DNA of 64,000 nucleotides from Lepidodermella squamata (GCA_047495785.1 JBLDXI010000024.1:4216001-4280000); one strand, 5' to 3'; counted from the first letter of the stretch, positions 3,001 through 64,000 are shown. The notes: generated by a model not told the origin, from the sequence alone. Translations and numbers: made by a program.

Positions 3001-6000
3001 CCACCAAGACCGCTGCAACTCGCTAGAAGCTATCAGTTTTAAGAATTTCGCTCAGGTGTCATACAAATAATTCACGTGTATTACAGTCCGCCCCTAGCCA
3101 ATTTGCGTCGCAAGAGCAGGTATCTAGCCCAGTGCATGTTCCATGACTTGAGCAATTGTTCACCCCCCGGCAATCGCCTATTTAAAAGGGAATAATCTAC
3201 GACGTATTGATCGAGCAAAAATTTACGCGTTGTGCAATTTGCTGCTATCCAGCCCGAAGCACACGTGCATTGATTTGGCGCAGTGCATACCCCTCCATTC
3301 AAGCAGCCACCTAGCGACGAGCAATCAGGAACGCAAGTACCAACACTTCCGCTCCATTGCTTGTTCACGACACAGGTCAAAAGCGCGGAGCTCAACCTAG
3401 TATCGTTGAAAACATAGCCAGCCAAGCAGTCGTAACGCCATACCGCGCCTCGAACATCTCGTTGGTCCACAGGAATCACAGAAGGGGTGGTAAAGTTGTT
3501 CGTAGTGTTGGGGAAAATAGGGGGTTGGGTCAAACACCGAGTTGAGTTGCATTGGGGAGCCCCGCCAGCCCAGCTCCCATAAGGCGGGGCACAAACTTGG
3601 CTCAAACTCCCAGAAACCAATTCGGTATTCGTATCACAAACATAGGTGAACGTGAGATTGCCACCGCTGACGATGGGCGTTGGCTGTAGAATGGCATTGC
3701 TATTAGGGAAGTCGGGTAACAGTCCACACAAAGACGTGCATTGCAGCCGAGTCCCTTCCCACCGTTTAGTCGCCGTGTTGCAAGTGAAAACTGCGAAGTT
3801 AGCCGAGCTGGAGTAACCACGTAGGCATGTATAGTTTACAGACATTTGCGTAGGCATGTTGACTATAGCCAGGTTTGTCCCGCTGATACCAGGCGGTGGC
3901 CCGCATACCGTTGAAACATGGGTGCATTTATCCATCCGGAAGTAAGAGTCATACGCAGCGTTAACAGTGCCAATTCCAGCTACGCAGGTCGCCGATCTGA
4001 GCTCACAACTAGAAATTCGGTCCCAAATAGCGACCGTGCATTCGAAGGCTTGAAGATTCGTACATTGCGATGTGCAGGCATCAGCAGAAGCCACGCTTGA
4101 AATTGTGGTCGAATTCCCAGTAGCTTGGCATCGGAAATTGCGGGCGATAATGTAACGGCCCCTTGGCCCCGCTCGGCGAATTTTCATTTCAACGAACTGT
4201 TGATTCATCGCAGTGTTGTTGTAGGATTTCCAGTAAATTCCCGTCAGCCCCGAATTTGCGTAAGGAGCGTTCAAGTTGGACCAAAGAGTTCCCGTGCTGC
4301 ACGGTGCGTCAAGCCACCATCCTCCAGTGCCACAATCGTCTACTATGAACTTATTGCCATTAAGTTGACTCAACGAATCGCCAGCTGTTGAGCAGCCTTG
4401 GTAACCAGTAGCTGTGATTTTGTACAAATCCGTGGTTAGATAGAACGTATTGTATAGGGCGAATGCATAGCCATTCGGTCCATACATCTCAACAAGCAGC
4501 TCGTAGCGCTCAGTCTCAGTCATAACCCTGATACTGCTCAGCCCGAGCCAAAAGTTAGCATTCAAAGAGCCGAATGAATTCGTGTAAGTAGGTAAATCCT
4601 GCATGAAGCTTTGCGAGGAATTCATGCGGCGCATTATTGTAATCCATCCTCCGCCTTTCAAATCAGTCAAGTTATCAAAGTTTTCAGAAAAACAAGTTTT
4701 CAGACTCTTACCCATAGTTTCTTGGTCACACCACGCTGTTATTGGATTGTATTCCTCGGGTCTTGATATAGACATTTGCCCAGATATGAATTTCAATGGA
4801 CCACCAGTTTGCTGCTGCAGGAAAGTGCAATCAAGACTAGGAGTCATGGTGGCTGCAAATAGGAATTAGCCAAATCAAGCATTACAATAGGGGGATTTAT
4901 TTACGCCAATATCTTGGCTGAGTTCCAGCGTATTTGTAACCGTAAGCTGCCCCCAATCTCATTCTTAGTTGGTCCCCAAACCTATACTTGAACGGATACA
5001 CTTGGATTTGTTGGAAGATCTCTTCGTTTCCATCGTCGAGCATAAAGCTTTTCGACGCATATGGGAGAGTTTCGGGATCGGCTAGAATAACTCATCAAGT
5101 CACACAAATTGCGCAGCGTGTTTTTGAAACTTGCATTTTCTTCTCACAGCCATCCATGACCCGGCCATCCTCACATTCGTAGGTGCTACGGTAGACCATG
5201 CAAGGAGTTGATTTGAGGTTGAGGAGCCCAAAATGTTGTTTAGATGGGACTGATACGAACAGTCTGACTTCAGCCACCATCCTCCGGGGAATCCGCAACT
5301 AGACGCTGGACCAGTAGTTGAAGTCGAGAAGTTCTGAAAGTTGTGATTTGTACTCAACGCGTCACCGCCGGTCGATGAGCCGTCGAAGTACATGAGGTAT
5401 AGCATGTAGCCATAGTTGCCCTCAAGCACGGTGAAATCCCACCAATGCGAAAAATAGGAGGTGGCATTTCTTGAATCATCGATCTTTACTAGAAGCTCGT
5501 AAGCGCTATTTCCAACAATAGCATTGATGTTATCTAGCCCTGTGAGCAAAATGCAGTAGGCTCAGTTAATAACCGATAATTATCAATTATTAATTTACTT
5601 ACCAATCCAATATTCACTTGCCGATGTGACGGTGGCGCTTTTGAAACCAACCTGATACGCTTGATATGATTGGTCGAAATTTACAGTGCTTGCAGGCCCA
5701 CGTTTCTGAATAACGGTCCAGCCTCTTGAGGACACAACGGGCAAAGCCGCGTTGAGGCATAGAACCTGACTGGGAGTACCAGCAAACGGGAAAATCCAAT
5801 AGACACCATCAGGGCTAGCGTTGTTTTGATCATAGATATCAGCGCATTCAGTCGGCTTTTGAAAAAGTGGTCTTATCATCATCATGACCATTCTTAGCGA
5901 GCTGGTTCGGCCATTCCAACTGGCCCAAGTTATGCCCTGCTCGTAAGTATTGTCCATTGCGGCACCGTTAAGGTTCGAGTCGAGGAACGACCCTCCACTG

Positions 6001-8734
6001 AAGGCTTTGAACCACCAGCCCCCGGTTCGATTTGCTATCACTTGAAAGGCTTGGCCGTTGTGTGACGATAGGGAATCCCCTGGAGCTTCAGGGTCGCTCA
6101 GCCAATTGTAGTTTGAAACGCTGAGCGTGTAGCTATTCGCAGAGCCAGATATGCTGAACGTCTTATATCGAGCTGTACGTCTAGCTCCGAAGACGTCTTC
6201 CATTACGATGGCCAACTCATAAGGATGGCTTGTAGAAGTCATCTTACTGATGACAGAGTTACCAAGATAGAAGCCAGTACTCATCGTGCCGAAACCTGTT
6301 TCATACGCAGCGTAATTCTGGTTGAAATCAGTGGTACCGCCTTGATAGTTCCGTTGGATAACTGTCCAACCTCCGCCATTGGCGCCCATTTCACAGTAAA
6401 CCTGCTTAGGATCAGAAGATTGACCGAGTAGGTATATTGTGTACACTCCAGTGGCTAAATTTGGCTTGTTGAATTGAAGATCAGCACAGTCGATGGGCCA
6501 AGCAATCTTCGGTGTTTTATCTATGAAGGGTGATTCAAATGTGAGATATTTTGACTTTCAGGTAGCTTACAAGGTACTCCGCTATATAGATCCGCTCGCC
6601 TGATCATTATTTGGGCGGTCTTCATCGACTCGCAGCAGCCTTTCCATGTTGGCCAGTTTACGCCCTGTGCGGAATTAGTGGTACCGTATATTCTGCGTAA
6701 ACGGAATAAACAAAAGGTCTAGTAAATAAGTGGGCAATCTGTTACCCATTGAAGTTTCCGGTACAAGCAGTGTTGTACCACCAGGCTGCCACATTAACAG
6801 AAGCGCAATTCGCAGCGTTTGCATCATTGTCTTTATCTTTCGCCGAGAACTTCCGGCCGTTACCTGCGGAGAACGAATCCTGCATATTTCCGCCAATGAA
6901 CGACCCAAGCGTTAGCGTATGATCCGCACTACTATCAGTGACTCTGAAACTGCTGTAGTAGGCCATGCCCATGAAGTCGTCGAAAGTTGTCGCTGTGAAT
7001 ACAAGTCGAAAAACGTTGAAAACACTCGTCAGAGCGCTTAGTGGCTGCAGGCCGAGCCAAAAGTTGGCTGATTTATTGCCGAAACCATTAGTGAAGCTGG
7101 TGAAAGTTTGATCGAAATTCTGGGCGTTGCTAACTCGCCGCTGGAAAACAGTCCAGCCGCCTCCGAATAGATCCATGTCACAATAGGTTGAAAACGGCGG
7201 TTTTGTTGGCGGGTTTATTGTGTAAACTCCACTGGGTGCATTCGGCTGGTTGAAAGCTAAATCCTCGCAATCCATAGGAGGCATGATCCATTTATCTAGT
7301 TGAGGAATTGGACCATATTCATCGTTTGCTATGGTTCAAAATTTGAACATACCGCAATGAGGCCATGGATCCGGTGACGTGAACGTTGAAAGGTCATTCG
7401 CGTAACCCATGGGACATTTACAGCCAGTGGGATCACAAGTCGTACAGCCAACGTGGCTTGGACATCCATATATAAGAAATCTCATCCTTGTTTCCGGCAT
7501 ACTCAAGCTGACACCGGTTGGATGAACCCTCAAACGCCTTGTTCTTACCACTGGGCAAAACATCGTGGGAACGAAATTTGTCGGGCTAGTAGATCCCGCG
7601 TTGCTGAACGATCTCGGTTGATTCGTTGAATCGTTCATGTTCGTGAGCACAGGGTAGAAGAACGAGCCTAGAGATTGTCTGGCCTGGAAGCTAACCTGAA
7701 AAGAAGTCAGGTAACCCTGCGCGCCTCCACCAGCTACTGTTAATCTGGAGATTGAAATGTCTCGATTGAAGTTGAATTCGATAAAAGGTGTCACGTCCCC
7801 AGCCGCTGGTTGCCAGTAATTCGAGGTGGCTAGATTCCCGTTGCCGTTAGCGGCTGTTCCTGTGGACGAAGTGATCGACCCTCCCCAAGTGCTGATCAGC
7901 GCAATAAGCTCAGAGTTACACCCAGCAACTATAATTCAATGACAAAGCTATAGAGAAGACGGCCATAACTAATTAACTTACACGTCCCGCAAGATGAACC
8001 AGACCATTCTGGAGTGCAGGTACAAACTCCCGGTGCGGTACAAGTCCCTCCGTTTTGACAAGCTGGTGCACATTTCGGATTTGCACAAGTCGGCCCTTCA
8101 TAGGTACCGGGACACTGACACGTATTGCCAACGAGACATGTACCGCCATTCTGGCAAGGAGGGGTACATATCGCTGTGAAGTCCAATATATAGGGTAAAG
8201 GTACGAAAATCCAGGGAAATTAGCTTACGCTGATTGCAGTATTTCCCAGTTACTCCAGCGGGGCAATCGCAGTAGCTTTTCGTAGCCTGTGTATTGCAAG
8301 TTCCTCCGTTTATGCAGATCGGGTAGTCAAGGGCATTGTAAGAGCAGAAAAAAGTGTCTTCGTTGGAAAAAAATTCAGAGAATTCCTGCGCAACCCTAGA
8401 AAATCGAGGCAACAATACCTGTTTGCTGGCATACTATGCCGGAATAATTGCCAGCGCAGAAACACAGGCCATTCGTGCACGTTCCGCCGTTGGAACAATC
8501 GACGTTCTGCGCACATCGCGAGGGCACCGCTGTGTCGCAAAAGGTTCCCATCCATCCTACTTGGCAATAACACTGATTGACCCCTGTGCAATTTCCATGC
8601 GAACACGCTGGATTGCACTCTACAAATAACCCGTTTATTAAATTTAAGTTTGTTATGAGCAAAGAAATATTACGTGCATCAGCAGCATCAAACATACTCA
8701 TAATCGAAATCAAAATTATTAGAAAATGGGTCAT
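1..8734 (-). CDS. Multi-exon receptor paralogue A, 3' end outside the window: signal peptide, EGFs, discoidin/FA58C-like, 4 FReD, PAN-like, 3 sushi, then about 21 tandem EGF exons; probably a polycystin-1-like gene like paralogue B
   Basis: ATG at 8734 (MTHFLIILISIMSMFDAADA). FReD motifs YCDM..GGGWTVFQRR, FWLGL and GGWW occur four times; sushi C..P/YxC/W..C patterns; about 100-nt phase-1 EGF exons separated by 50-60 nt GT-AG introns from 3177 to the window edge. Domain order and several intron positions match 10715-24028. The polycystin C-terminus is inferred, not seen. Confidence 0.85.
740..2867 (-). repeat. Higher-order tandem duplication of a 7-EGF-exon block (period about 1.09 kb)
   Basis: Exons in 740-1774 match exons in 1829-2867 one for one (e.g. 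ttgaacaatctgttcccttccaaccagcactgcaagtgcaagtgttc near 1211 and a near-identical copy near 2298). The exon at 2921-3023 resembles the 740/1829 exon. Confidence 0.85.
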
Positions 8735-10714
8735 TTTGATCAAAATTGAGTTTACAACTGAGTTATATCATATGTATTACACACTAATTTTGGCGGAGTG
8801 GCTTGGCGCTGGCGTGTTCTTGCCAAGAGTTACAATTGTTTTTTTTTTATCATTATTTTTTAATGGCTTGATCAAATATCGAGCAATGCCTACTGACCTG
8901 AGAAAGAGCGATGGCTCTATTTCCATTGTTAAAGCAATTCATTTCCCTTTCCTGCTATGTAACATTGCAGCATCTAGCCGCATTCATTATTGATGAGTTG
9001 GACGGGGTGTCGCCATCTCGTCGATGGGTCCGTTTCTTCAGATGTGCTTCAGAACAGCGTCATAGGTAAGCATTTCAAAATTGATGAATGATGAGGATAA
9101 ATTTAGTCTGCTATCAGCTCCTCATCGATGCATACTCGGGGAATATTACTCAGAGTTCATTTGAAGAAAAGTCTGCGGAATTTTTTCATTAATTATAGAT
9201 CATTTCGATCAATTGTTCCACCAAAAACGTTTTTTTTAATATAAAAACCCTTCTCATAGAAAAATAGCGACACAAGCTGAATGAATGATTCATGAGCAAA
9301 ACGGTGTGTGAACTTGTTATATAGAATCATCGGCCTGGAAAAGGCTTGACAATCAATAAAAAAAGGCTGGAATGCCAATATACTTTTCTCGTAACTTCTC
9401 CTTACCTGCCGTAACTATCTAATTTCCAGGCAGGACCGAAAAAATGCAGGGATAGACCGCCTCGTCAGAATTAAAGCACTGGTTTTGCATCGATATTGGC
9501 CGGGAAAACAATCCCTTTTTGTGGTTAAAAATAGAAAATAAAAGTAATTAATATTCTAGCAAAATAGAAAAAACGTGATTATCGATCAGCTGCGAGCTTA
9601 TCTGAATATCTAGTTCAAGCAGCACTTTTACAGGGTCCAGGTGTGAGAAGCGCAAGAGGGTACGAGGGTGCCGTACCCAACTCGAGTCTTGGCAAGAAAA
9701 CCCTAAAAAGTACTCTTAGGTCTGATAAATTTTGGACGAAAATGGCCTGAAAGTACCATCCATGCTCACGGTTCACGGTTCCTTGGATTTTTGCTGTGCC
9801 AAATCTCATTATTGCATTTAATATTTTAGATGACCCGCCAAGCGATTTCGGCCTATAAACCTTTCATGGCAGAATTATTTATCTGCAGGAGAAAATATAT
9901 TTGATATTTGACGGCAATTCTAGGAGTTTTCGAACGCCCTGATCACGATCCGTTTGTCTTCATCTATCACCGTTAAGGCTGTACTAAACTGTCCAAAATC
10001 GTCCTATCCGCCCACTGGCAGCTGATTTCAGTCGATTTTTAAAACAATTAGAATTGCAGATTATAAATTACTCCCACGAATTTCCTTAACATTCTCCCTC
10101 AATCATATCACCGATCAAAAGGACAATCGAGAATTCATTTAATTCAATTTTCTGCGGATTTTCGGAAATCGAAATTCCGAAATCGTCCTTCCCCCGAAAA
10201 GACAACATCTGACGCATAAAAATCACTAGTGCATAATACCCCCTTTTCGAATGATTGCAGACCTAGATGGCGGAAATCGCTTGGCGGGTCTCATTCATTT
10301 ATTTGAAAGCTCATACGCCCAAGAGAGGACAGCTTGACAATGTTATGGAAATCTCAAATATCTCCGCCCTTAGACATTCAGACTCACAATCTGGTTTTCT
10401 TTTCTATGAAACAAGTGTACATATCACTCAAACAATGGCTTCCTTTTACCATCACCAATCTTTTCCTTTGTTTCTTGATTATCTTTCTTCGAAATTAGTC
10501 ATCAGAGAGCAGAAAAACGGCAGATAACATTACTACCACCGCCACCACCGCTATTATTTGGAAGTCACAGCTTCAATGCAGTTACATTACACCTAAAATG
10601 CCGTGTGAAGATCAGGGAATTTAAAGTTAATTATTTATGATTATCCAGTATTTTAACCTGCTTACATCGCGTGCACATAGAATGAATGTACCTAGTGCCT
10701 GGAAAAATCAGTAT

Positions 10715-13700
10715 TCAATCGAAATGAATGTCTTTCGAAACGTCATGCTGACTGAATCTCCTCATAAAATCGTAGTGAGCCCGGCTGTTATTTTGTTTCA
10801 AAGCTGGAATCAGTGGCTCAATAGAGGCTATTCTCTTCGGTCTCCGACTGCCAACTGCCGATCGCGCTTCTTTCAAATATTCCTCTGCCAATCTGATACT
10901 ACAAGTTGTTCGCTTATCTTCATTGAAAAGCGAAGACGCATTGACCAACGAATCGATATGCTTTGACAATCGCTCAATCGAGAGATGAACTAATTTCGAT
11001 TCATTTCAAAAGAGGAATACAGTCAATTCGAATGGAAAAACTTACGATTGGACTGGCCGTTAGGTTTGTCATTCCCCAGAGGGTCCAGGTCAGTTTTGGC
11101 TCCTTTTCCATAGGATACGAGCTTCTTCAGTTCTTCAGCCATGTAATCCGCGACTTCTTTATCCCAGTCGGTAGTCCCTTCAGCGTTGTCAGATATCTTA
11201 CCATAGGTTACAGTAATGATTGTCATAAATATTTGGACGGCTAAGAACATCACAATTGACGAATAAGCTACGCAGTAGACCATGATGAATCGAGACTCAG
11301 ATCCCAAGGCGATTAAGTTCCCTGTCACACCAATCACATTCTGAATGAGTGTCATCAGAGATGCAGTCATTGATCTGAACTCGCTCTGGCTTGCACCAAG
11401 GGTCAGGAATCCAAGACCCGCAAACATACTGGTAATCATTGTGAATATTGCGATGAAAGTAGCAATGTCATTTCTGCCCTTCGACAAAGTAGCCAAAAAG
11501 ATGCACCAGTGCTTGTTAAACTTGAAATGACGGAAGAACAATAACATTGTCATGAAAAATGTCAATCCGTAAAGATTTGCCATCGCCTCGTCCCAGATAA
11601 CAAGTAGATCAAGATTAGTGAATGATGTACGGTCTGTTTGCATTTTCGTGATTACTTTGATGATGGCCGATATGCGGACGCAGAAGAGGCCGACAATGCC
11701 GAAAGCAATCAGTATCGATATCAGCTCTAATGAATTCCAGCCGTCTTTCAAGTGCTGCACCGCCCCGTTTTTCTTCATGAGATAGGCAACCTTGATTGCT
11801 TCACTGATGAGTAAGATGATCCACAACCCTTGGATGACGTATACAGCGGCACTGCTGGCGCCGGAGTACTGATAGAGCTGCAAAGGGTACACTCGGGTGT
11901 GGTAGTTCATGCCCCCAGCTGGCATAGCTTCGAAAACCACTTTGACGCTTAAGAACAGGTTTATTTGGCTATTGTACAAGTTGAAATCGACGAAAAGCAC
12001 AGAAGTTGCGTTATCCAGCCATCTGCCTGCTTTCAGGTAAGCAACAAGCTGCTGGGCTTTCCACATTTTGGTAGGTAGATCGACGTAGTAGCCATCGCTT
12101 CTGTAAATGGCAGACCAACCATTATATGGGATTCCAGCAGGATCTTCTCGATAGAGCCAGGGAGCGTCGAATGATGAAATATTCGATTTGTCAATCGAAT
12201 AAGGCGGTAAATAGCCCCATCCAAACGAGAAGTCACGATTTTCGGAGTTTGAGCCGAAGCCATAATTGTTCGCATAAAAATCTTGACATGCAATGCCACC
12301 AAGATTTTCTGGATAGCCGTCAATTACGGAAATGGGACAAGGGCGACTAGTTACTCGCTGCTGCTTGAGTCGAATCGGCCCAACCAAGACCACATCATGA
12401 TTTGGCACTACATACATGTTTTTCATATTGAAAATTCCGCCGTAGTTCAACTGGTTTCCGTTCAGGAAATTAGGGATGACTTTCTGGCTGAGCCAGTCGA
12501 GAATACGCCCGTGATCAGTTATCGGCTCCAGGACTTGCTGTGCCCCATCGAATACAACTAGTGGTCTGATATCATCGACTAGAGTGTATCTATATGTGTT
12601 CTGCGTGGTCGCAATCACTAGCGCAAAGGTGATGACGTATGCGATTTGATGGGCTATTCCAGCCAGCGTGTTGCGCGTTCGTTTGAATACGGTCGTTTTC
12701 TGTGAAGTGTTGTCTGAAAGAGAATGAATTTCAGTAGATGAAGATTTATAAATGAAAGTTGAATACTTCTTGAGTACACCAGCTTTCCCATTGCCATGCC
12801 GTCATCCGGGAGTTTCAGTAGAGACGAAGTGAACATGGAGATCAGGAGAACTTTCACCGACTGGACAACAATTATGTCTTGGACTATGTTCATTCCCATG
12901 CTTGAAAGCCATTGCAGAGACTTCTCGCTCCCCCATTGAAGGCTATATAAGATGACAACGGAGACGGAAACAATAATCGAGATTGCAACCACTGAAAAAA
13001 TGATTTTCTGTATAATAAACAGCGCAGTGCAGCTGAACTCACATGCCCATGCAATCCCAACAGTCCAAAATGGCAGCTGTATGGGTTTCTTCTTTTTCTT
13101 CTTTTGATCTGTCTCCGCGGCATCGTCTGTGTCATCAGGTTCTTTCACTGCAGCATTAAAGATGGTGATCCAGTTGCTCTTCTCAGCAGAACGCCGCTTT
13201 ACTCTTTTAAAGATGAAAGCAATAGCTGCTGTAGGAGGGATGATGATCAAGCAACTGGCCAAACTTGTGTATAACGTAAACCACGAAATGCGAAAGAAGC
13301 CACCAATATTTATCCCTATTCTCGGTGCGGAGCTTTCTTGCCCATAAAACAGACAGTTAACCATCATGGCCATGAAAAGTGCCGACACAACACAGGACAG
13401 CCGTTCAACACGGGTCCAGTTGCTGGGCAGAGGCCTTCTTATAATTGAAAGCCAGGGATGGCTATCAGTAATGCCGAGTCGCGAATGACTGGATACGAGG
13501 TATTTGAAGCTTTTAATGACATCTTCTGTCGCCAGATCAGACTTGACTCTGTCGCCGGACTGCATCTTTTGCTGAACTGGAAAAATGTACTTTTTGCCAC
13601 CATTCACATCGACAATTACGACCTTGTCCATGAAGATCTGAAAAGGGTTGCTACCAATTTCCCAAGGCTTGCTTATCACGTCAAGTTCGATTGCATCGAT

Positions 13701-16700
13701 GAATTCTATAGGATAAACCGTGGTAAAGGTGAAATTGCCGGGTACTTTTCCAGCAAAGTTTTTTCTGAGACCATCATGCAATCTTCGAAAAGACGTTTCA
13801 CAGCCATCGCCTATAAGGCGGATGAACACTTGAGGTTCTAGCTCGTATCTTTTTACGCCATAGTAGTCAACAGATATTAGATACGTGAATTCATGGTGGA
13901 GTTTGTTACTTAGGATTGGCAAAAAGGCCCAGTTCTTCAAATCCTCCTTATCAGAAGTAAATGCGAACCAGATCGTAGCAAGGTATGCTACCACGCATAT
14001 CGTCATCAACGAGAAGACGGACGCATTCTCCGCCACTAGAGTGGTAAAATTGGCCAAAATCTCAGTTAGCTGTATCGTATTGGGCGAAATTAGGAGATCG
14101 GCTCCGAAATCCCCGAAATAGGAACTTTTAAATGAGACCTTAGATTCTGTGGAATCTGCCTCGAGATCAAAGTCTTCCTGTGAAGTTGAATTAGAGCTCA
14201 CATCACGTTTCAACCTCGATCCTAAAATTCGATCCTCAGAAGCGAAACCGATTCGCAAGTGGTAGCCATAACATCTTTGCATTTCACAAACTGAAGGTGG
14301 CAAATCGTCGTTCGGAGAATAGCGCGTGAGGTTTTTCTTAAGAAATGCGCTTAAAGTGAATGAATGGTTCGCATTAGACCCAATATTTTGTGGCGCCTTA
14401 TTATTGAATGCAATCAGAGCTGATCGAGGGATGATGACTCGAAGTTCAACATCTTGGATGAAATTCATTTTCAGAGGACCTAAGTTTGAATTCACACTAG
14501 CTGTCAAGCTATTCCCAGTAACATTGATAGACCAAGAGTTTCTACCGGCCGTTAGAGTAGCAGTAGCATTCAGGGATATAAAGACAGAGTAGTCGAACGG
14601 TATGGCTGGAATTATGAGGATGAAGTCTCCCGCGTCTACTGATATAGGGAATGTTGCGAGTGAACCCAACTTGTCTGCATTTGTTGAAATGTCGCATTTC
14701 ACCTTACTGATATCGCACTGCGACTCGACTTTTTCCGTCGAAAACTGCCTTGCCTTGCCCAACATTGGGTATCCAGTCATCCTGACTGGCCAGTTTTTGT
14801 TCAAGGCTAACTTGGTCGATCCAAAGAACAGGTATAACGATATCGTTGGCATATTGAACGGCTTATTTATGTCGAATACATTCGAAATATAAGCAGTTAA
14901 CACTACTGAAACTTTGCTTGATTCATCCAAACCCTGCGGCAAATCGATTAAGAGATCTCTCCAATTCTCAACTGAAGGAATTTCGGTAGCAGCTAAATTT
15001 GAGCTGATTCCCAATCCAGGAAGCTTTCCGGGTAAAGTGTTGCGAATTACAACAGCGAAGAAGGTTCCGTTGAAGCTGAAGTCTTTACCAATAGCGAGTG
15101 CACTTTTCACCATTGCGGCTGTGGACTCCATCATCGACCTGAAATCATCGAGCAACTTGTGCGTCTGAGCTGTTGTCATTTCGATTTTTGTCGGTTTCAC
15201 CACAAGTGACTCGGAATCGAACTTGTCGGCTTCACAACGAACTGCGGTGGTGGGCAAAATGATGGCCGGCGATTCAGGCTGAGGGATAAGTTCTTTCTCT
15301 AGTACTGTCGTTAACACTGAGCTCACAGATTCAGTGTATGCTGGTAAATTACAGTGAAAGTTGTTTAAACCGGACCGGTCTAAACCGGACTTTCTCCAAA
15401 CCGGACGATTTCGGGTGGCTCGATCCGAAAGTGTGGACTTTACATTATAATTTTATTGTCTAAACCGGACTCTCTAAACCGGACTGGTGTATAAACCGGA
15501 CGGATTTGGGGCTCGAAGTCCGGTTTATGCAATAAAAAGTCCAATTTTCTATATAATTTTGAAGGAAGTGCCAGCCCCTGCCTGACAAGAGTAGCCTCAA
15601 AATTTCGAAAAAATTTTAACTTCCAAATTATTGCGAATAAAGCTGAATATATTGATAATTTATATTAAAATTGTCGATTCCGTACTCAAAAACTATTACT
15701 TAGCTTGTAAAACTTGAAAATTCCATGAATTTCACGTGGTATTTCCTATACCGGACTCAGTCCGGTTTAAAATAATTCGGACTTTCTCTAAACCGGACGA
15801 TTTTGCCTGGCACGACCTTAGTCCGGTTTAGACAACTTTCACTGTACATTATTCTTAATGGGGCATTATAGGTACATCTCATTAACAACCTTGAGAAACC
15901 GATAGAATTGTTTCCGTCGAGAGATTCGCTGCCATTTTCTGGTATCGACTGAGCAGTTCGGCCGAAAGTGACATGAAATTTTGCTAGAGAAAGAGTAAAC
16001 AGCCTAAATCGGGGAAAATCATCAAATAATGTAAGCTACCGAATCGACGACCACATTCGCCGAGCTGGAGCTGCTTGAAATCACACTTGCGCTATCTTTC
16101 ACTTGCGAACTGATTGATGTTACGTTATCAGCAAGAGTTTGGTCAGGGAGTTTGGCCACAGCTGCAAGCTCCACAATTACCTGACTGGGTTTAGCGGTGG
16201 TTGATAGCTGGATAGATGAAGTTGTTAAAATTGATGTTGTTGTAAGAGCTGTTATGATAGAAATAGAAATGCTCAACAACTCGCCAGTGAAGGTTTTGTG
16301 GATTACAAATATTGCATGAATCGCCCGTCCAGAATGCTGTGCAGCTGCAGTTGTTCGCCGCGGAACACGTTCCCCCATTTTGGCAACCCCCAATTGATGT
16401 ACAGTCAGGTATTGATTTCGCGGTAGTTGATGGCTGGTTGGTTGAAGTTGTCACAATTGATGTTGTTGTGATCGCTGACATCGTACAAGTTAAAAATGTC
16501 CGTAAAAAAGAGGAAAAGAAATTACGTATATTGCATGCATCCCCAGTCCAGAATGCTGTGCAGCTGCATTTGTTTGATGCCGAACAGGTTCCCCCATTAA
16601 AGCAGCCCCCAATTAACGAACAGTCAGGCACCGAGCAGCTCGAGCTTGTCCAGCCTTGGTCGCAAACACAGTTATTTTTTGAAATGCAGAGACCATGACC

Positions 16701-19700
16701 GGAGCAATTTGCCACATCAAGGCAATTCGCTGTTAAAGTAACAGACGGATAAAACGCCAAACCATTGAAATGGAATTTAACCTAGTTCCGTGCAGTTAGA
16801 CCACGCTCGACAATCACCTGTGAAAGCAAACATTCACATCAGAAGCAAGGAGGATGATTCACGCAGTTTACCATAGCTGCAATTCGCGCCTGTCCAACCT
16901 ACAGCGCAGGTGCATTGATTCGGCGAAGAACAGGTTCCTCCATTCAAACACGCGCCCAAACCTGAGCAGTCCGGCACACACGTGCCGACTGAGCCCGACC
17001 ATTTCCTGGTTGTCATATTGCACCACAAATTCGCATAAGGAAGGTTGGTGTCGTTGAAAATATATCCAGGCAATGAGCAGTTATACTGCCAGACAGCGCC
17101 CCCGATGATTCGCTCATTCAGAGGAATCGGCAAGGGTATGGTAAAGTTGTTTGTGGTTCCAGCGAATGTTGGCGGCTGGGGGCAGCTAACATTTAGGCAA
17201 AGAGGTGTTGCGCCCTGCCAAGTCGTATTTGGAGGGGCGCAGGTTTGGGTCAAACTTCCGTTCACCAGAGATAGGCCCTGGTTGCATTGATAGAAAATCG
17301 TAACCACCTCGTTGCTGACTTCAAAATTCGGTAGTAGGAAGGCGTTTACAGCAGTGAAATTAGGTGCAAGACCGCAGGCTGCTCTACACCTCAACCACTG
17401 TCCCTGCCAATACTTGCTAGTCGTATTGCACGTGAGAACGGTCCACAGTTTGTTTGATGCGATGTTTGTGTAGTTAGGCAGACATGTATAATTTACAGAC
17501 ATAACACTTGGCATGCCTATGATTTCAAGCTCTGTCCACCCCATGGCTGGCGGAGGCCCGCATACACTGAACATGTCGCACTTATCCATCCTGAAGTAAC
17601 TATCGTACGAAGGGTCGCTTGTACCCATGCCGACATCACAAAACGTGTCACTCATATCGCAGGTTGATCCGGATATAGCAGCAACGTCGCAAGCGGCTAC
17701 ATTGCTGCAAGAATCGATGCATGCTTGGACAGAGCTGACCGTTTTCGATGTGACAGTGCCAGCCGAGCAGCGAAAGCCTCTCGCCCGCACGTGTCTACCT
17801 CGAGGGGGAAGTCTCTGCCGAATCTTGATCTCAGTCCATTGCAAGCTTTGCGGGCCGTATGTCTGAGCAAATATTCCACCAGAACCTGTTCCACTATACG
17901 GACCGTTCAGGTTCGAATAGCCCACAGTTGTTGTATTGCAAGTTTGTGGGAACCACCAACCTCCTGTGCCACATGGATCAGTTTGAAAGGTCTTCTTCTC
18001 AAGAACTAGCGTTCCACCAGTTGAACAGCTCTGAAATGAGCCTGCATAATTCGTCATTGAGTAAGCTGATCCGTATGGATAAAAAAGAGTAGCATATGAG
18101 AAAGCGTATCCTGCAGGACCTCGCATCTCAAATAAAACTTCAAAGCCAAAAGAATCGGTGATCTTTCGTAAGGCGTCTAGTCCCAGCCAGTAATTACCGG
18201 TGATCGAACCAAATCCCGATATATAGGTGTCGTAATCCTGGTTGAATGAAACAGTATCGTCGATTCTGCGCTGGAAAACCATCCATCCACCACCTTGTAA
18301 TACACAAAACCTCGTAGAATCTAGACACTTTCAAGTGGCAATATAGTTACCCCAGGTTTCTTGATCGCAGAACGCGGTTCCATTCCATGCGCCTGCCGAG
18401 AAATTATTATAAATTGCTGACACGAATTTTAAGTTAGCAGGCTGTTGTTGCTGGAAATATGTACAGTCCCTAGGTGTGCTCCAAGCTATAGAAATAGAGC
18501 TTAGGCCTATCAATATTATGCTTCAATACGAATACTTGTGATTGTGGGCTCCTCGTTAGAATACAGATATCCATAGTTGGCGAGTCTAATGCGCGAAAGT
18601 TCACCCGACAGCCATCGATATGGTGGGTCTACCATGTAGTTCACCACATCGTTGCCCGGAATTTGATTAGACAGGCCACTTAATGGTGGATATTTGCAGT
18701 ACATCCCATTCGACACTAAAGCATTGCAAAATTGAAAATTCATCGAGAAAAATTAAAGAACTCGCCTCGTCGGCGGACACCCATCATTGTAGTAGCCATC
18801 GAAGTGTTAAGCGGAGCGTAACCCGCGTATGCTACGGCTTTCAGATCTTTTGATGAGCCCCAAACGTTGTTCAAATTAATTTTGTACGCGCAGTTAGTGC
18901 GCATCCACCATCCACCTTCAAGCCTTGAAGCAGCCGGGCCGAAGCAAAGGGTCGCTGAACCGTTGTCAAAAGTCGAAAACGGCTGATAGTGATGAACATC
19001 GAATGCATTGACTAGGACAGTGAATAAGAATTTACTTTAAAATTTTCCTACCATTCTAAACTTTGGCCACTGTTTTATCTTAGCTTGCTTTCAAACTGCA
19101 CCACACTGCTTCATGCGTGTGTTGCGCAATCTATAATCTATAGCCACTCAATAAGCCTGCTTAATCCGCTGTTTTGACGATCGCCGCAGAAATTAGTCTT
19201 TTTTACGAGCAGAAATTATGATGATATTTTAGCTAAATTTAGGGCGCTCGCGTCAACATTTGATGAAAAAAGTAAGGTAACGACCATAGAAAGCAATAGA
19301 TAAAACATGCCGCCCAAAGGCTGTAATTACTGTCTTCTCTGCTAGCGCCTTAAACTCAAATAAAGGTTTTGACTGGAAATTATTCGGAGATCTATAATTT
19401 TTTAAGAAATAAGTGATGTAAAAGGAGTAGTATTTTACAAATTCGACGCTGTTTCATCGATGTTTTACCATTATATATATATATATATCACTATTTGGTG
19501 AATCGCACTACTAAATTGTTTCATACCGGTGTCATAGGCTCAATTCCGGGCCCCCCTTAGATACGAGCAGGCCCCAAGCGTCGGTTGCGCAATCAGAGGG
19601 TAAAATTGGACTTGTGCGCGCGCACTAAGTCGAAATTTTTGTTAATGTCGGGGCCGCGCGCGCTAATGTCAAAAGGCTAGTTAAAAAATGTTTGGCGGTT

Positions 19701-22700
19701 TTTATACCAAAATAAAGTTCACACAATACTCTATCAAATAGATATAGTTTCTCACGTTATAGGATTAAAGGAAAAAAGTTTTACGCGCACCCAAAGTTAC
19801 GAGTAGCGAGTGCGCGCGCTCTCACCCGGCGCGCAAAATCTAAGGTGCGCGTAAAACTTTTTTATTTTAAATAATTCGCGCGAGAACACCACATTCAATC
19901 GATAGAGAAGTGTCTGAATTATCTTTTGGTATAAAAACCGACGCGATATTTGAAAGTAAGCCTTTACGATCATCGCGCGCGGTATTAAGTTTGTTAGAAT
20001 TTAGGAATCAGAAAGTTTGGAGTGCGACTGATGCGCGCGAGCCAAGTCTAGATATTTAACCAACTTAATACCGCGCGCGATGATCTTATAGGCTTAATTT
20101 CAAATATCGCGTCGGTTTTTATACCAAAAAATAATTCAGACAGTTCTCTATCGATTGAATATGGTGTTCTCGCGCGAATTATTAAAAATAAAAAAGTTTT
20201 ACGCACGCTCTAACTTTCCATGCGTGCACGTGCGCGCCCCTAACCACCGCGCGGAATTTGAAGTGCGCGTAAAATTTTTTATTTTGAATTTCCCGACCGA
20301 GAACCTATATTTATTCGATAGCGAATTGTTTGAAATTTATTTTGATATAAAAACCGCCGGAATATTCAAAAGTCGCCCTTTGAAATAAGCGCGCGCGGCC
20401 TTAATTTTGTTAAAAATTTCGACTTAGCGCGCGCAACCGACGTTTGGGGCCTGCTCGTATCTAATGGGGGCCCGGAATTGAGCGTGTCATAGTAACAATA
20501 AATTGATCAATAAGCACGCAGGTCAAAGATTAACTTACTACTCAAAACACAACGTAGCGCAAAACACTGCAAAACACTTGGGACCATTGGATACATAGGA
20601 ACCAATCTTAACTACTGCGCCTCGTTTCCAAAAACACCTATAACACCCATGAAATGCGCAAAGTTTTTCAAATACACTGAGCAAATTCGTCTTCAGCAAA
20701 AAATTCGACGGAAAAATTGTGGCGCATTATTTTTGCAAAATTGTAGGGAAATTTTCGATACAGTTTTTTCAAGATGCTTGCTATGATAATCCTTGACCAC
20801 CTTTGTGGACTAATTCATGAAAGAGTTTGATTCGCTTTTCAAGAAATTATTTTTGATGCGCGTGCTTCGCCACGCCGCAACCACCAACGCGCGCGAGCGC
20901 GTTAAAGACAAGTGATTGTGCAGCTGTTTGCGCACGCACACGACCTGTATACTCGCGTTCGCTTACGAGAAGGACAACCTTATCCGTCGGCACTGAGAGG
21001 GTTTAGTAAGCTCGCTCACCGGGATTGTTAGACGCAAGGTCATAATTATTCGAATCGATGTATATTTTGTAACCAGTATCCTCCGATAGAATTCTGAAGT
21101 CTCGCCAGTGGCCAACATTTGTTTCACCGTTAATCGGATCGGTTGTTATTGTGAAGAAATCCAAACACGTCCGACGCCCAAGTTGATAGATGTATTCAAG
21201 CCCTGTGAAATGCCATCGTAACAGGATTAAAAGGAAAATAGCGCATCAGCTAAGAAGGGGAAAATACTGGGGGTGCCCAAAAACGTATCTAATTCCACAA
21301 TCACTCGTGATGCGAGATACGAGAATATGTAACCTCCGCAAGATTCACATACCTAACCAATAGTCGCTTGATTCATTGAAAGGTTGCGCAGAAAAACCCC
21401 ATTTGTAGTCTTGCCAGCCTCTGGAAAAATTCACGTTTCCGTTAGTTCTCTTTTGAATCATCTACGCGAAGAAATTGTAAACGTGTTGTTGCTTATTCGG
21501 AGTAGGAAATACCGTGATTCCGCGATAGTCGGTCGTATTCGAGATGTAGGGCAATTTATCGAAGAGGCAATAAACTCTCAGTGGCTGCATTCCTATTGGG
21601 TAAATCCAGTAAACGCCATTTGTGGAGCTGTTGTCAATCGTGAATATGTCGTAGCAATCATATGGCTTTTGAACAAGCGGCTTTATCATCATCACACTAC
21701 TTTTTATCGAGTTGACCTTGCCCTTCCAAGACGACCATACGATGCCTTGTTCAAACGCATCATTCATTGGAACACCATTCAAGTTTGAATCGAGGCAGGA
21801 ACCGGATACCCAGTCCTTGAACCACCATGCCCCCGACCTGTTCGAATAAACACGAAATTCTTGCCCATTATGGGTCGACAGGGAATCTCCAGGTGTTTCG
21901 GTGTCATTCATCCAATTGTAGCCAGAAGCGTTCAATCTATAGTTCGTGCTGGAGTCACCGATGAAAAACCTCCGATACCTCGCAGTTCGAAAATTCCCGT
22001 TGGTGTATTCGAGTGTGACTGCTAGTTGGTAAATCGGCCCAGCGGCTGTAATTTGGTTAATTGCGGTGTTGCCAAGGTAGAAAGCCAAGTTCTGATCGCC
22101 AAAGCCGCTCTCATATGCAGCGAAACTTTGATTAAAGTTTTGGTTAGCTGCGGGATAATTCCTTTGAATAATCGTCCAGCCACCGCCGAGAGCCGACATT
22201 TCGCAATAGGCTTTAACCGCGCTCCCACCAGGCGGATAAATTGTATAAACTCCACTTGGTGCATGAGGCGAGTTGACAGCAATATCAGAACAGTCCACCG
22301 GGTTCGGGTAAGACATCGCGACACCTGGAATAATCTGTTTGCGAAGTACGAGGATTTAATCGGAGCACAAACCTGGCGTTCCGTAGAAATCATTAGGCTG
22401 CCGCCTCACCATCATCTGAATGTTCTTAATAGACTCAGATGCAGGCCGAAAGGAATCCCAATTTACTCCCTGGTAGGGTGTAGTTGAATTGTAAACTCTG
22501 GGTGGATATGGCTGACTGTAAGCGTGTCTCAATCGACTAAAATTAACCTACCCATTGAGACTTGATGCCTGGCAAGTGTTTCCGTACCACCAACCACCCA
22601 TGTTCGTCGCTGCGCAATTTGAGCCAGTGACCTTATCGTTGTCTTGATCGGCGGTACTGAATTGACTACCTAGTGCTGTGATCATCGGGTTTGCCCCCAT

Positions 22701-24028
22701 ATTGCCGATACCCGTCTGGAGGTAGGAAAGCGTGTAATTACTTGACGTGCTTATCGTTCTAAAGCCTTTCCAAATTCGGAAACCGTTGAGATTGTTCTCC
22801 AAATCAGCAATGTATATAGCCATTTGATAGTAGTTATACGCCGGGGATACTACAGAATGAAGGTTGTGCAAACCCAGCCAGAAACTATCGCTGAATGAGC
22901 CGAACCCGGATACGTAATCGGTCCACGGCCGATTGAAATCGACGGAAGCCGAAGATCGCCGCTGAAATACCGTCCAGCCGCCACCGAGTGCCTTCATATC
23001 ACAATATACTTTTCGAGTGGCTGTTCCAAAAGTGTTGATGGTGTAAGTTCCACTGGGAGCCGATGGCTGCCTCATTGCAATATCCTCACAATCGAGCGGT
23101 GGTATTGTCAATTGATCTGATAAATTAATTTCGTTCATAGATTAAGCGATCTTTCTGACTAACTCAATTAGGTAATACATACCGCAATGAGGCCATGGGT
23201 TAAGAGTCGGATCTTTACTAGAGTAACCAATCGGACATTGGCAACCAGCTTCTGAACACACAGTGCAACCAGCATGAGCCAAGCAGCCGTCCACCAGAAA
23301 CCTAATTCGCATCGCTGTAATAGACGTCGAACTGTTCCTCGGATGGATGCGCAATTTCTGCGTCCTAATAACAGGGCACAGAACGATCGGGGAGAAATAG
23401 GTCGTCGAAGAGCCATTTAGCGATGTGTTGAAGAGCACGGGAGTGCTCCTTGAATCTTGCTGATCAGTCAATACTGGCAAGAACAACTCGCCCATGCCGG
23501 TCTTCGCGAGAAAAGATAAAACAAATGAAGTCAAATAGCCGAAACCTATTTCCCCAGCAGCAGTTCTTATCGTGCGAACAGAGACCTCCCTGCCAAAGTT
23601 CAAATCCAAGTATATGTTGATTTCACTTCCCAAAGGTCGCCAAAAAGATCCTGGTGGCAGATTTCCGTTTGCATTTGCAGCAGTTCCAGATGAAGCAGTT
23701 ATTGATCCACCCCACTCAGCAATCTTAGATATCAGCTCAATATTTTGGCATGCCGTTGCTATTTCATTAACGATGTTCATAGATATATAATCCATAGTAT
23801 TACTTTTTAACTAACATTGATTGCAAGTTGGCCCAGTCCAATCATCCACACATGTGCACGTGTCTGGAGCCGTGCAGCTGCCACCGTTAAGACAAGGATT
23901 TGAACAGGACTCTGCTTACGTAAAATATGAAATGTATGCGGAATTTTCCCGTAATGGAACGAACGTGCGGTAACTTTTTGCTGCAAGGTGAAGATTGAAA
24001 TGTGTAGAAAACATATAAAAAGCCGCAT
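10715..24028 (-). CDS. Paralogue B: apparently intact polycystin-1-like (PKD1L-type) receptor-channel with EGF/discoidin/4xFReD/PAN/3xsushi/EGF ectodomain
   Basis: Manual splicing from ATG 24028 (MRLFICFLHISIFTLQQKVTA) to TGA 10715 keeps one frame through all ORF pieces. PKD1L hallmarks: PNTI..TM1..D..D, PLAT-like YLISV..VFIRLIG, HPWLSI..RP..SNWTRVERLSC, WG.EKS.QWL, GPIRLKQQRV, Y...GYYVDL, RWLDNATSVLFVDFNLYN..INLF, S1-S6 and a C-terminal coiled coil (IERLSKHIDSLVN). Confidence 0.88.
15352..15844. mobile_element. Non-autonomous Tc1/mariner/pogo-type MITE in an intron of paralogue B
   Basis: TIRs CAGTGAAAGTTGT(T/C)TAAACCGGAC at both ends, flanked by TA; repeated subterminal TAAACCGGAC motifs; no ORF. 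Confidence 0.9.
19538..20483. mobile_element. Fold-back/MULE-like non-autonomous DNA element with 9-bp TSD, in an intron of paralogue B
   Basis: TIR GCTCAATTCCGGGCCCCC..TAGATACGAGCAGGCCCCAA; TSD GTGTCATAG at 19529-19537 and 20484-20492; internal inverted repeats. Confidence 0.85.
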
Positions 24029-24697
24029 CAGGAAGCCACTAGATTATGAGATGGTTCCGAAAATCGATTTCGGCAGTAAGTTATCTGTTTCTTCAAAAAA
24101 ATCGTGATAATGCTTAACTGCCTTCAAAAACGCCTAAAATACTTATGAGGTCTCAGTTATCCTAAATCCAAGTGGAACAACTAAGCTATTGGCCATTTAT
24201 TGGAAAACGGTCAAAGAAAGTGCCTACGTGTTGGGAAACCCCTAACACGTAACCTTAAAACTGCAAAAAATTAAGTTATCATTTAGCAACAGGCAGCAAC
24301 ATTGATTCCGCCCCTTCCGCCAGTTTGAAATAAATCGATCGCTTGCAGGTTTTGTTGACTGCCAAGTTCAATAATTAGTTACCTATCCGCAGGGCATATC
24401 GTCTATAACAATGAAAATACCCAACCAGCAAATTTGTTATTAGCCATTGCGTATCTATTGTATAATTGATGTTACAGCTTTTTGCAACGCTTTTTTGGGA
24501 GAATCGATGCTTGCCATTCTTAGCTCTTTTGTTTAGATTTTTATCAATCAATAAGACAGAATGACCCCGGTGTGGTGCGCTTTCCGGTTCAACACTTTCA
24601 AGGTTTGCGCATTCATGATGTCGCACATGGTTCGCTCGAAGACGGGATGAATGTAGGTAGAAATGCCAAACCCACAGTTTGTTCGATAAGCGATAGG
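22129..24697. repeat. Segmental duplication shared with 61447-64000 (5' end and upstream region of paralogues B and C)
   Basis: Mostly near-identical at 22732-24697 vs 62051-64000 including upstream non-coding DNA; more diverged at 22129-22730 vs 61447-62050. Confidence 0.92.
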
Positions 24698-62900: not shown

Positions 62901-63350
62901 CAGAGACCTCCCTGCCAAAGTTCAAATCCAAGTATATGTTGATTTCACTTCCCAAAGGTCGCCAAAAAGATCCTGGTGGCAGATTTCCGTTTGCATTTGC
63001 AGCAGTTCCGGATGAAGCAGTTATTGATCCACACCACTCAGCAATCTTAGATATCAGCTCAATATTTTGGCATGCCGTCGCTATTTCATTAACGATGTTC
63101 ATAGATATATAATCCATAGCATTACTTTTTAACTAACATTGATTGCATGTTGGCCCAGTCCAATCATCCACGCATGTGCATGTCTCTGGAGCCGTGCAGC
63201 TGCCACCGTTGAGACAAGGATTTGAACAGGACTCTGCTTACGTAAAATATGAAATGTATGCGGAATTTTCCCGTGATGGAACGAACGTGCGGTAACTTTT
63301 TGCTGCAGGGTGAAGATTGAAATGAGCAGAAAACATACAAAAAGCCGCAT
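53955..63350 (-). pseudogene. Paralogue C: mosaic polycystin-1-like pseudogene
   Basis: Same PKD1L motifs as paralogue B. Lesions: 4-nt insertion near 62673, large internal deletion near 61447, frameshifts near 57930, 56510, 55535 and 54725, and TGA at 57617-57619 where B has Gly. Confidence 0.88.
58504..58548. repeat. Perfect 20-bp inverted repeat with 5-nt loop spanning a putative 3' splice site
   Basis: cccgtaatgcgtagacacct-gcaaa-aggtgtctacgcattacggg. Confidence 0.95.
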
Positions 63351-64000
63351 CAGGAAGCCACTAGATGGTTCCAAAAAATCGATTTCGACAGTAAGTTATC
63401 TGTTTCTTCGAAAAATCGCGATAATGCTTAACTGCCTTCAAAAACGCCTAAAATATTTATGAGGTCTCAGTTATCCTAAATCCAAGTGGAACAACTAAGC
63501 TATTGGCCATTTATTGGAAAACGGTCAAAGAAAGTGCCTACGTGTTGGGAAACCCCTAACACGTAACCTTAAAACTGCAAAAAATTAAGTTATCATTTAG
63601 CAACAGGCAGCAACATTGATTCCGCCCCTTCCGCCAGTTTGAAATAAATCGATCGCTTGCAGGTTTTGTTGACTGCCAAGTTCAATAATTAGTTACTTAT
63701 CCGCAGGGCATATCGTCTATAACAATGAAAATACCCAACCAGCAAATTTGTTATTAGCCATTGCGTATCTATTGTATAATTGATGTTACAGCTTTTTGCA
63801 ACGCTTTTTTGGGAGAATCGATGCTTGCCATTCTTAGCTCTTTTGTTTAGATTTTTATCAATCAATAAGACAGAATGACCCCGGTGTGGTGCGCTTTCCG
63901 GTTCAACACTTTCAAGGTTTGCGCATTCATGATGTCGCACAAAGACGGGATGAAAGTAGGTAGAAATGCCAAACCCACAGTTTTTTCGATAAGCGATAGG

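Follow-up and report, generated by a model that had tools for sequence, protein, structure and literature searches.

Proteins of the polycystin-1 type are believed to link events outside the cell to a TRPP channel, and their ligands are mostly unknown. PKD1-type subunits form 1:3 complexes with PKD2-type subunits, and PKD1L3 lines the pore in the PKD1L3-PKD2L1 complex. PKD1-family proteins have been described with lectin modules, cleavage at the G-protein-coupled receptor (GPCR) proteolysis site (GPS), and channel regulation (PMC1934368). Sea urchin REJ proteins, which carry C-type lectin and SUEL modules, have been linked to the recognition of egg jelly and to Ca2+ entry (PMC1934368, PMC2120838), and human PKD1L3 lacks a REJ domain yet is a member of the family (PMC1934368). 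Here, we describe a candidate relative of these proteins, referred to as gene B, on the minus strand of a 64,000-nucleotide stretch from Lepidodermella squamata (GCA_047495785.1, JBLDXI010000024.1:4216001-4280000; the whole stretch is called the window, and positions are counted from its first letter). Positions 24028-10715 are likely to hold one intact 18-exon gene of the PKD1L family, encoding a protein of ~3,165 residues with a type-I start and 11 transmembrane (TM) segments, and we extend the same good but incomplete confidence to the function proposed for it below. The predicted order is signal peptide, EGF, discoidin-like domain, four fibrinogen-related domains (FReDs), PAN-like module, sushi repeats, four EGFs with Thr-rich linkers, GAIN-fold domain, TM1, PLAT, TM2-5, TM6, polycystin domain, and a six-TM PKD channel.

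The region is eukaryotic, and its open reading frame (ORF) list contains long frames on the minus strand. Junction tracing and translation of 24028-10715 give 18 exons with 9,495 nt of coding sequence, or 3,165 codons, and zero stops in the exon bodies; single open exons reach 857 and 555 codons. All 17 introns have an in-frame canonical solution at each junction, with 16 being GT-AG and one probably GC-AG. Most are 51 to 75 nt long, the exceptions measuring 142, 150, 280, 549, and 2,008 nt. What look like in-frame stops at 23142-23144 and 18331-18333 both sit within short canonical introns (66 and 57 nt, respectively), and excising these introns restores canonical domain motifs such as 'CDQETW-GGGW' in FReD4. 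The second of these stops, a TGA, was considered as a nonsense mutation when compared with a neighboring copy, paralogue A, and was rejected as such. Since the 57-nt GT-AG intron 18350-18294 excises the TGA and its removal restores the CDx-xxx-GGGW spacing of the FReD, the reading of gene B as a pseudogene was dropped. Hydrophobic segments are limited to the last three exons, and by hydropathy TM-like segments are confined to exons 16 and 17.

All domain and homology searches for gene B were run exon by exon. The FReDs are the clearest part of the ectodomain, with Pfam Fibrinogen_C matches on the minus strand at 22551-23141 (5.5e-37), 21465-22355 (7.6e-40, spanning profile positions 3-220 in FReD2), 18743-19036 (4.5e-05), and 16837-18330 (3.9e-14); on exons 10-11, FReD4 matches at 2.8e-15. 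All four pass Pfam's cutoff, including FReD3, which is spread over four exons. Read by eye against the reference motif, FReD1 alone keeps the 'DQDNDK...NCA...GGWWY..C' calcium/ligand-loop signature (as 'FSTADQDNDK...SNCA...GGWWY..C'), and FReD2-4 are without the Asp cluster and the NCA. Further Pfam matches are to Sushi in 16972-17565 (1.5e-4, 22.6 bits, above cutoff) and to EGF families in 16837-18330 and 16194-16781, exons 12-13 matching EGF_2 at 3.5e-09 and EGF_Teneurin at 1.2e-07. Exons 10-11 are also 43% identical over 620 columns to the paralogue A exon at 3084-4865, which matches Sushi at 7.6e-10. The discoidin assignment is weak, as its three leads are each weak, yet they are concordant: exon 3 is 46% identical to the paralogue A exon at 7339-7935, itself a match to F5_F8_type_C at 1.7e-5 (below cutoff); a PDB profile search returned nothing but the factor VIII C domain, at E 0.29; and Atlas look-alikes are uniformly F5/8 type C (0.91). 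The PAN-like module is called from Atlas look-alikes only, which are uniformly PAN (0.94). The first-pass annotation, made from the DNA before this analysis, had read the protein as free of recognizable PKD repeats and REJ, and this was borne out, with no Pfam match to PKD repeats (PF00801) or the REJ domain (PF02010) in any exon, the juxtamembrane exon having been tried up to E 10. Because human PKD1L3 also lacks REJ (PMC1934368), this absence is compatible with membership of gene B in the family.

The family assignment itself comes from the membrane-embedded half. The 932-codon frame at 12657-15452 has no Pfam match even at E 10, and a full-library HMMER search with it found 1,220 relatives. 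Sixty-two of these were aligned (alignment A1), and a profile built from A1 matched polycystin-1 (6a70_B) at 9.4e-88 and lipoxygenase PLAT domains at ~1e-13. The AlphaFold model of exon 16 (857 residues; predicted local distance difference test, pLDDT, 77.6) shows a β-rich extracellular domain, a long TM helix, a β-sandwich at residues 472-601, and four more TM helices. Searched with Foldseek, this model returned solely polycystin-1 (E 7e-08) and lipase/lipoxygenase PLAT domains (root-mean-square deviation ~3 Å over ~121 columns). Pfam places Polycystin_dom (8.1e-29) and PKD_channel (3.6e-19) within 11026-12801, and against PDB sequences exon 17 matches PKD2L1 at 9.5e-34, PKD2 at ~1e-30, PKD1L3 at 9e-26, and PKD1 at 1.6e-09. 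From sequence and model together, the protein is predicted to have both features of the polycystin-1-like family, namely a PLAT domain directly after TM1 and a C-terminal six-TM channel whose first two helices are separated by a TOP domain, the latter also a feature of PKD1L1-3 and PKDREJ.

Between the last EGF and TM1 lie ~440 residues, which a GAIN fold accounts for. When modeled alone by AlphaFold (374 residues), this region has a pLDDT of 81.7 and a predicted template-modeling score of 0.80. Adhesion-GPCR GAIN domains make up 8 of the 12 top VIA-align matches over model residues 1-369, with Z-scores of 11.5 for CD97, 11.0 for ADGRG6, 10.8 for CELSR1, 9.8 for BAI3, 8.7 for GPR56, 8.5 for GPR110, 8.1 for ADGRL3, and 7.3 for GPR97. 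Foldseek on the same model gave mostly noise, and only the BAI3 and CL1 GAIN domains reached prob 0.92-0.97, with low TM-scores. Other parts of the model resemble Ig-like sandwiches and are thus read as an insert in the GAIN domain. On the strength of the model, we conclude that gene B has a GAIN domain before TM1. It does not follow that the protein is an adhesion GPCR; the GAIN domain is present, yet the portion in the membrane gives matches to polycystin-1 and PKD channels and not to family-B 7TM receptors.

What this GAIN domain appears to have lost is its cleavage site. Aligned with A1 (consensus 'HLTSFG..F.VPPNTIDF'), the GPS position reads F-K-S-S-Y-F-G-D-F-G, so that neither Cys is retained, nor the His-Leu, nor the Thr nucleophile (HLT to YFG). 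Because these residues are replaced, the self-cleavage chemistry of the GAIN domain is read as gone, and the motif is likewise lost in the nearest clade and in relatives from Lingula. An upstream 'CYGYHL' (14273-14256) was considered as the GPS and rejected, as the family alignment places the GPS at 'SSYFGDFG', ~50 residues downstream. A furin-type RLKR motif lies in a loop of the GAIN model with pLDDT <50 (exon residues 367-386, GAIN-model residues 320-334). At its position, a basic R/K-x-K/R-R motif is found in 7/7 aligned clade members (RRKR, RKRR, RKKR, RRRR) and in a second local copy, paralogue C (RKRR).

Taken together, these features suggest how the protein could work. In an alignment to PKD2L1, the pore-filter position (11334-11326) reads IGV where PKD2 and PKD2L1 have LGD, an Asp to Val change. 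Because of this replacement, and because PKD1-type subunits are found in the 1:3 complexes introduced above, the sequence makes gene B more likely to encode an auxiliary or odd heteromer subunit than a channel on its own. By analogy, the protein would probably assemble with PKD2-type subunits, whose gene lies outside the window, as a 1:3 heterotetramer having one odd pore position, IGV versus LGD. Its extracellular part of ~2,100 residues sets a lectin-type head (discoidin-like, four FReDs, PAN-like, and three sushi-like modules) on an EGF/mucin stalk. Judging from its motifs, the FReD head probably recognizes, mainly through FReD1, a glycan, either acetylated or of another kind, for which gametes, microbes, and the environment are candidate sources. 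A bound ligand would then tune either a Ca2+-permeable channel or a signal of the GAIN/stalk type. Cleavage into N- and C-fragments, normally autocatalytic at HL^T, may instead be carried out by a furin-type convertase at RLKR. The earlier label of 'receptor-channel' is therefore kept in part: a channel domain is present (Polycystin_dom, PKD_channel), but a lone channel is doubtful in view of the IGV filter, and activity is inferred.

Alternatively, the single gene may act as an adhesion/GPCR-like signaling receptor through its GAIN/stalk region and PLAT domain, with a six-TM domain that is non-conducting. The loss of the filter Asp of PKD2-type channels would fit such a role, as would a retained GAIN fold whose conserved protease site could expose a stalk peptide, and polycystin-1 has itself been discussed, in part of the literature, in terms of an atypical GPCR. 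However, the channel domain is well conserved, matching PKD2 and PKD2L1 at 1e-30 to 1e-33 and better than it matches PKD1, and PKD1L3, a comparable match at 9e-26, has been solved in complex with PKD2L1 (7d7e/7d7f). We consider a purely signaling role unlikely, although it keeps appreciable weight beside a subunit of a heteromeric channel.

Head and membrane body are connected at a critical joint, where exon 14, whose last position is 16040, leads via a 94-nt exon (15983-15890) into exon 16, which begins at 15340. It is possible that the locus instead holds two adjacent genes, a secreted FReD/sushi/EGF protein ending at ~16.0 kb and a shorter PKD1L-type gene from ~15.3 kb, with the splice at 15.3-15.9 kb being an artefact. 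A search of public sequencing runs for the stretch found a single run, of genomic DNA, whose contigs cover introns and repeats and show no joints. The linker exons are of low complexity and have no homology that could be scored; the 549-nt intron, exceeded in length by only one other, is filled with repeats; and on related contigs, automatic callers place the beginning of the channel-half protein close to the 15.3-kb point (P0001, P0003), these being prokaryote-style ORF calls on eukaryotic DNA. Yet a separate channel gene would begin poorly, since exon 16 opens with ~440 extracellular residues rich in N-glycosylation sites and has no Met-led signal peptide ahead of them. A separate ectodomain gene would likewise end poorly, for its exons have neither a terminal stop nor a TM-like anchor and run in frame via two canonical introns into exon 16. 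In the nearest relatives, which lie on two metagenome contigs in ENA (L001 and L002; one or two other organisms) and are 39-41% identical to B, the sushi module ends at a consensus donor (CAC/GTAAGT and AAT/GTAAGC, the slash marking the exon end) and is spliced directly, across a 56-62-nt intron, into the GAIN region in frame and on the same strand. Paralogue C keeps the same order, with its EGF modules and GAIN-homologous region <500 nt apart and nearly all of that interval in open frame. Two genes are thus improbable here.

Two further observations concern this part of the single gene. The 549-nt intron (15341-15889) contains many copies of a short GTCCGGTTTA-like motif, and the depth of contigs from the DNA run is 750-3,700 within it versus ~100 in exons; because of this raised depth, its content is probably a high-copy repeat or miniature transposon. 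Separately, DNA-run contigs 95-99% identical to B across 12600-18500 of the window differ from it at sites spaced by multiples of three (e.g., 13128/13134/13137 and 13311/13317/13320/13326), which suggests near-identical alleles or paralogues that vary mainly at third codon positions.

Gene B is flanked by its paralogues, and sequence comparison identifies it as a member of a locally duplicated, recombining family. Paralogue A has the same head plus extra EGFs and is 40-51% identical in protein to B exons. Paralogue C is a mosaic. Its 5' 2.6 kb, including upstream DNA, is 91.5% identical to B at the DNA level (B 22129-24697 versus 61448-64000); beyond this tract it passes directly to EGFs, GAIN, TM, PLAT, and channel regions at 40-56% protein identity to B and is without FReD3, FReD4, PAN, and sushi. 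A stop in the FReD1 exon, another at 57617-57619, and at least 3 frame breaks mark C as a pseudogene. The tandem family of the first-pass annotation is accordingly present, copies A and C both lying within the window, but with C a pseudogene and A visible by half. Divergence between B and C has a ratio of nonsynonymous to synonymous rates (dN/dS) of 0.07-0.24. That B itself was recently silenced or never expressed, its open frame merely undecayed, is very improbable: the neighboring pseudogene, the recombination and mosaicism of the array, and the absence of expression evidence (the sole run being genomic DNA) would allow it, but 3,165 stop-free codons with exons of up to 857 and 555 codons, the usability of every splice site, and the B-C dN/dS speak against it.

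The B-C comparison also holds an oddity of its own. In the most similar tract, non-coding DNA differs by 1.8% and exons by 4.6% (Fisher p 0.003). Over exons 1-3, dS is 0.145 and dN 0.018, with mismatches clustered and mostly at third codon positions, and synonymous sites are ~8x more diverged than the upstream DNA and introns (1.8%). Introns downstream from 23182 are 24-34% diverged, marking an older boundary. Plain duplication does not predict exons more divergent than non-coding DNA. Exon-limited micro-conversion patches from other paralogues would produce such a pattern, and the exon excess may reflect them.

Several points weigh against reading gene B as one gene with a lectin-like head. 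The exon boundaries were placed by eye with a simple splice score, and the 280-nt intron at the FReD3-FReD4 junction (18766-18487) can be spliced only from a GC donor or from a GT donor that is weak; its best solution is GC-AG (GAG/GCGAGT ... TTTCTATAG), and the GT alternatives score poorly. BLASTP and tblastn of linker exons 14-15 against paralogue C and L001 gave nothing significant, and because linker homology is too weak to score, the collinearity argument for the linker is one of position only. The single-transcript claim, which the first-pass annotation had also made in joining a FReD/discoidin/PAN/sushi/EGF head to a PKD1L body, has since gained the in-frame splice chain and the comparison with relatives, and it stands on this splice logic and comparison. 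In B itself, Pfam gives no match for PLAT, for discoidin in exon 3, or for the PAN module. Finally, since the classical ligand-loop signature is gone from FReD2-4, the head may serve in structure or adhesion and not be lectin-like.

Gene B would matter in several ways. Its head, assembled from lectin folds that are well understood (FReD, discoidin, and PAN) and including a FReD1 that is likely binding-competent by its motif, offers a tractable case for the polycystin ligand question. The gene can also be viewed as a natural experiment on the GAIN domain, which here retains its fold but not its self-cleavage and has a conserved protease motif next to the dead site. A bolder picture is of a large recombining family of lectin-headed polycystins, whose germline-diversified FReD/discoidin heads would couple recognition of foreign or gamete glycans directly to Ca2+ entry, amounting to a pattern-recognition (or mate-recognition) ion channel, and in which regulated furin-type cleavage would replace GAIN self-cleavage; this picture is a doubtful one. 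The coordinates of gene B and its paralogues are collected below.

Table 1. Features of gene B and of the two paralogues within the window.
Feature	Position	Strand	Description
Exon 1	23965..24028	-	ATG at 24028; hydrophobic signal-peptide-like N-terminus MRLFICFLHISIFTLQQKVTA...; in-frame 53-nt GT-AG intron to exon 2
Exon 2	23816..23911	-	One EGF module ...SCSNPCLNGGSCTAPDTCTCVDDWTGPTCNQ, 6 Cys in 31 residues
Exon 3	23183..23758	-	Discoidin-like (F5/8 type C-like) domain and short Cys-rich tail
Exons 4-5	22410..23116	-	FReD1; C-terminal strand in exon 5
Exon 6	21513..22334	-	FReD2 complete and start of FReD3
Exons 7-9	21461-21353, 21202-21020, 19011-18767	-	Remainder of FReD3; 2,008-nt intron 21019-19012; FReD motifs in frame
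Exons 10-11	16872..18486	-	FReD4, PAN-like module (17787-17563), three sushi-like modules (17565-16972), one EGF
Exons 12-13	16307..16729	-	Three EGF modules with Thr-rich mucin-like linkers between
Exons 14-15	15890..16248	-	Thr/Ser-rich linker and lead-in to juxtamembrane domain; introns 16039-15984 and 15889-15341; no stop
Exon 16	15340-12767	-	GAIN-fold domain, TM1, PLAT, TM2-TM5
GAIN-fold domain with extra β-sandwich insert	14064..15185	-	AlphaFold and VIA-align
Furin-type RLKR motif	14205..14216	-	Low-confidence GAIN loop, ~27 residues upstream of degenerate GPS
Degenerate GPS	14097..14126	-	FKSSYFGDFGAD aligned with family consensus 'C-x-C-x-HLT-x-FG'
TM1 and PLAT	13536..14018	-	TM1 ~14018-13960, then PLAT ~13925-13536; hydropathy, profile, model
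TM2-TM5 and cytoplasmic loops	12767..13535	-	Model helices 611-664, 686-712, 775-840; hydropathy; polycystin-1 structural matches
Exon 17	11046..12713	-	TM6, polycystin (TOP) domain ~12522-11875, six-TM PKD channel domain ~11865-11200; preceded by 53-nt intron 12766-12714
Exon 18	10715..10989	-	C-terminal cytoplasmic tail; stop codon 10717-10715; alternative acceptor 10917; no Pfam match
Paralogue A	1..8767	-	Ectodomain half only (EGFs, discoidin-like, FReDs, sushi, many EGFs); cut by window start
Paralogue C	54128..64000	-	Mosaic pseudogene

Elsewhere in the window, a 648-codon open frame at 25206-27149 on the minus strand matches Neur_chan_LBD (the ligand-binding domain of Cys-loop receptors) at 4.1e-14 and is a separate gene directly upstream of B. 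A 281-codon open frame at 51368-52210, also on the minus strand and downstream of pseudogene C, matches sushi at 2.3e-05 and may be a further family fragment or another gene. A retrovirus-like element lies at ~34-42 kb.

Among named proteins, the nearest relatives of gene B are PKD1L2-like proteins of Lingula anatina (XP_013397161.1, XP_013397107.1, and XP_013384713.2) at 32-35% identity. A phmmer screen with the B ectodomain exons over the best 150 representatives found a FReD in one, the Branchiostoma lanceolatum 'PKD1L3' CAH1271112.1 (P0139), which is ordered as signal peptide, two F5/8 type C domains, FReD, EGF, C-type lectin, GPS, PLAT, and PKD_channel. When this protein served as the query, one further such Branchiostoma lanceolatum model (P0156) came up, together with many amphioxus PKD1-like proteins that carry other heads (CUB, MAM, kringle, sushi, pentraxin, or SUEL). 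A literature search found no paper on a FReD-bearing polycystin. The FReD-polycystin architecture, as read from these sequences, is therefore rare and not unique; the first-pass annotation knew of no description of it, and the two Branchiostoma lanceolatum models are a precedent, within a setting of varied Lingula and amphioxus heads (MAM, CUB, kringle, sushi, and pentraxin).

A tree of the TM1-PLAT-TM5 region, built on 62 rows among the top matches with other matches and too-short rows excluded, puts B in a fully supported clade (SH-aLRT 100) that comprises 9 rows, all unnamed sequences, and adjoins the Lingula PKD1L-like proteins. The FReD protein from amphioxus falls within an amphioxus-specific group of paralogues (99), far from B. 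Because the two fall in separate clades, FReDs were gained independently in amphioxus and in the gene B lineage, and such independent capture shows free shuffling of recognition modules in a family for which variable lectin heads are already a known habit. The closest clade seems to share this habit. The available heads of the two metagenome relatives (L001:1-1400 and L002:60-2230) contain sushi, EGF, two concanavalin/LamG-like modules, and a Thr/Ser mucin stretch beside the GAIN region, the LamG-like and mucin calls being made by eye. No FReD was found within the ~1,000 residues available. As these modules differ from those of B, heads differ even within the closest clade.

The Lingula PKD1L2-like proteins share with gene B modular heads and the loss of the C-x-C-x-HLT motif (reading 'FKSNFFGSF'), but their heads are kringle, or MAM/fn3/CUB, or none, with no FReD detected. 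The Branchiostoma lanceolatum 'PKD1L3' models are the only public proteins found in which, as in gene B, F5/8 type C, Fibrinogen_C, EGF, PLAT, and PKD_channel occur together; unlike gene B, these uncharacterized gene models have one FReD instead of four, a C-type lectin of their own, and an intact GPS (C-x-C-x-HLT). Human and mouse PKD1L3, which partner with PKD2L1 (PDB 7d7e/7d7f), have the same 11-TM body, with a juxtamembrane GAIN/GPS region, PLAT after TM1, and polycystin and six-TM channel domains. Their ectodomain is a short one with a C-type lectin and a canonical GPS, whereas that of gene B runs to ~2,100 residues, includes four FReDs besides its discoidin-like, PAN-like, sushi, and EGF modules, and has a furin-type motif along with a dead GPS. 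The sea urchin REJ proteins (suREJ1-3/SpREJ) likewise form a multi-gene family that sets carbohydrate-recognition modules and EGFs on a GPS/PLAT/11-TM body, but FReD, PAN, and sushi modules are unreported in suREJ. Invertebrate fibrinogen-related proteins (FREPs) and ficolin-type lectins resemble gene B in their Fibrinogen_C domains, in the calcium/ligand-loop signature of the FReD1 type, and in their tandem recombining families. These lectins, however, are secreted with one C-terminal FReD, while gene B carries four internal FReDs within a predicted 11-TM protein.

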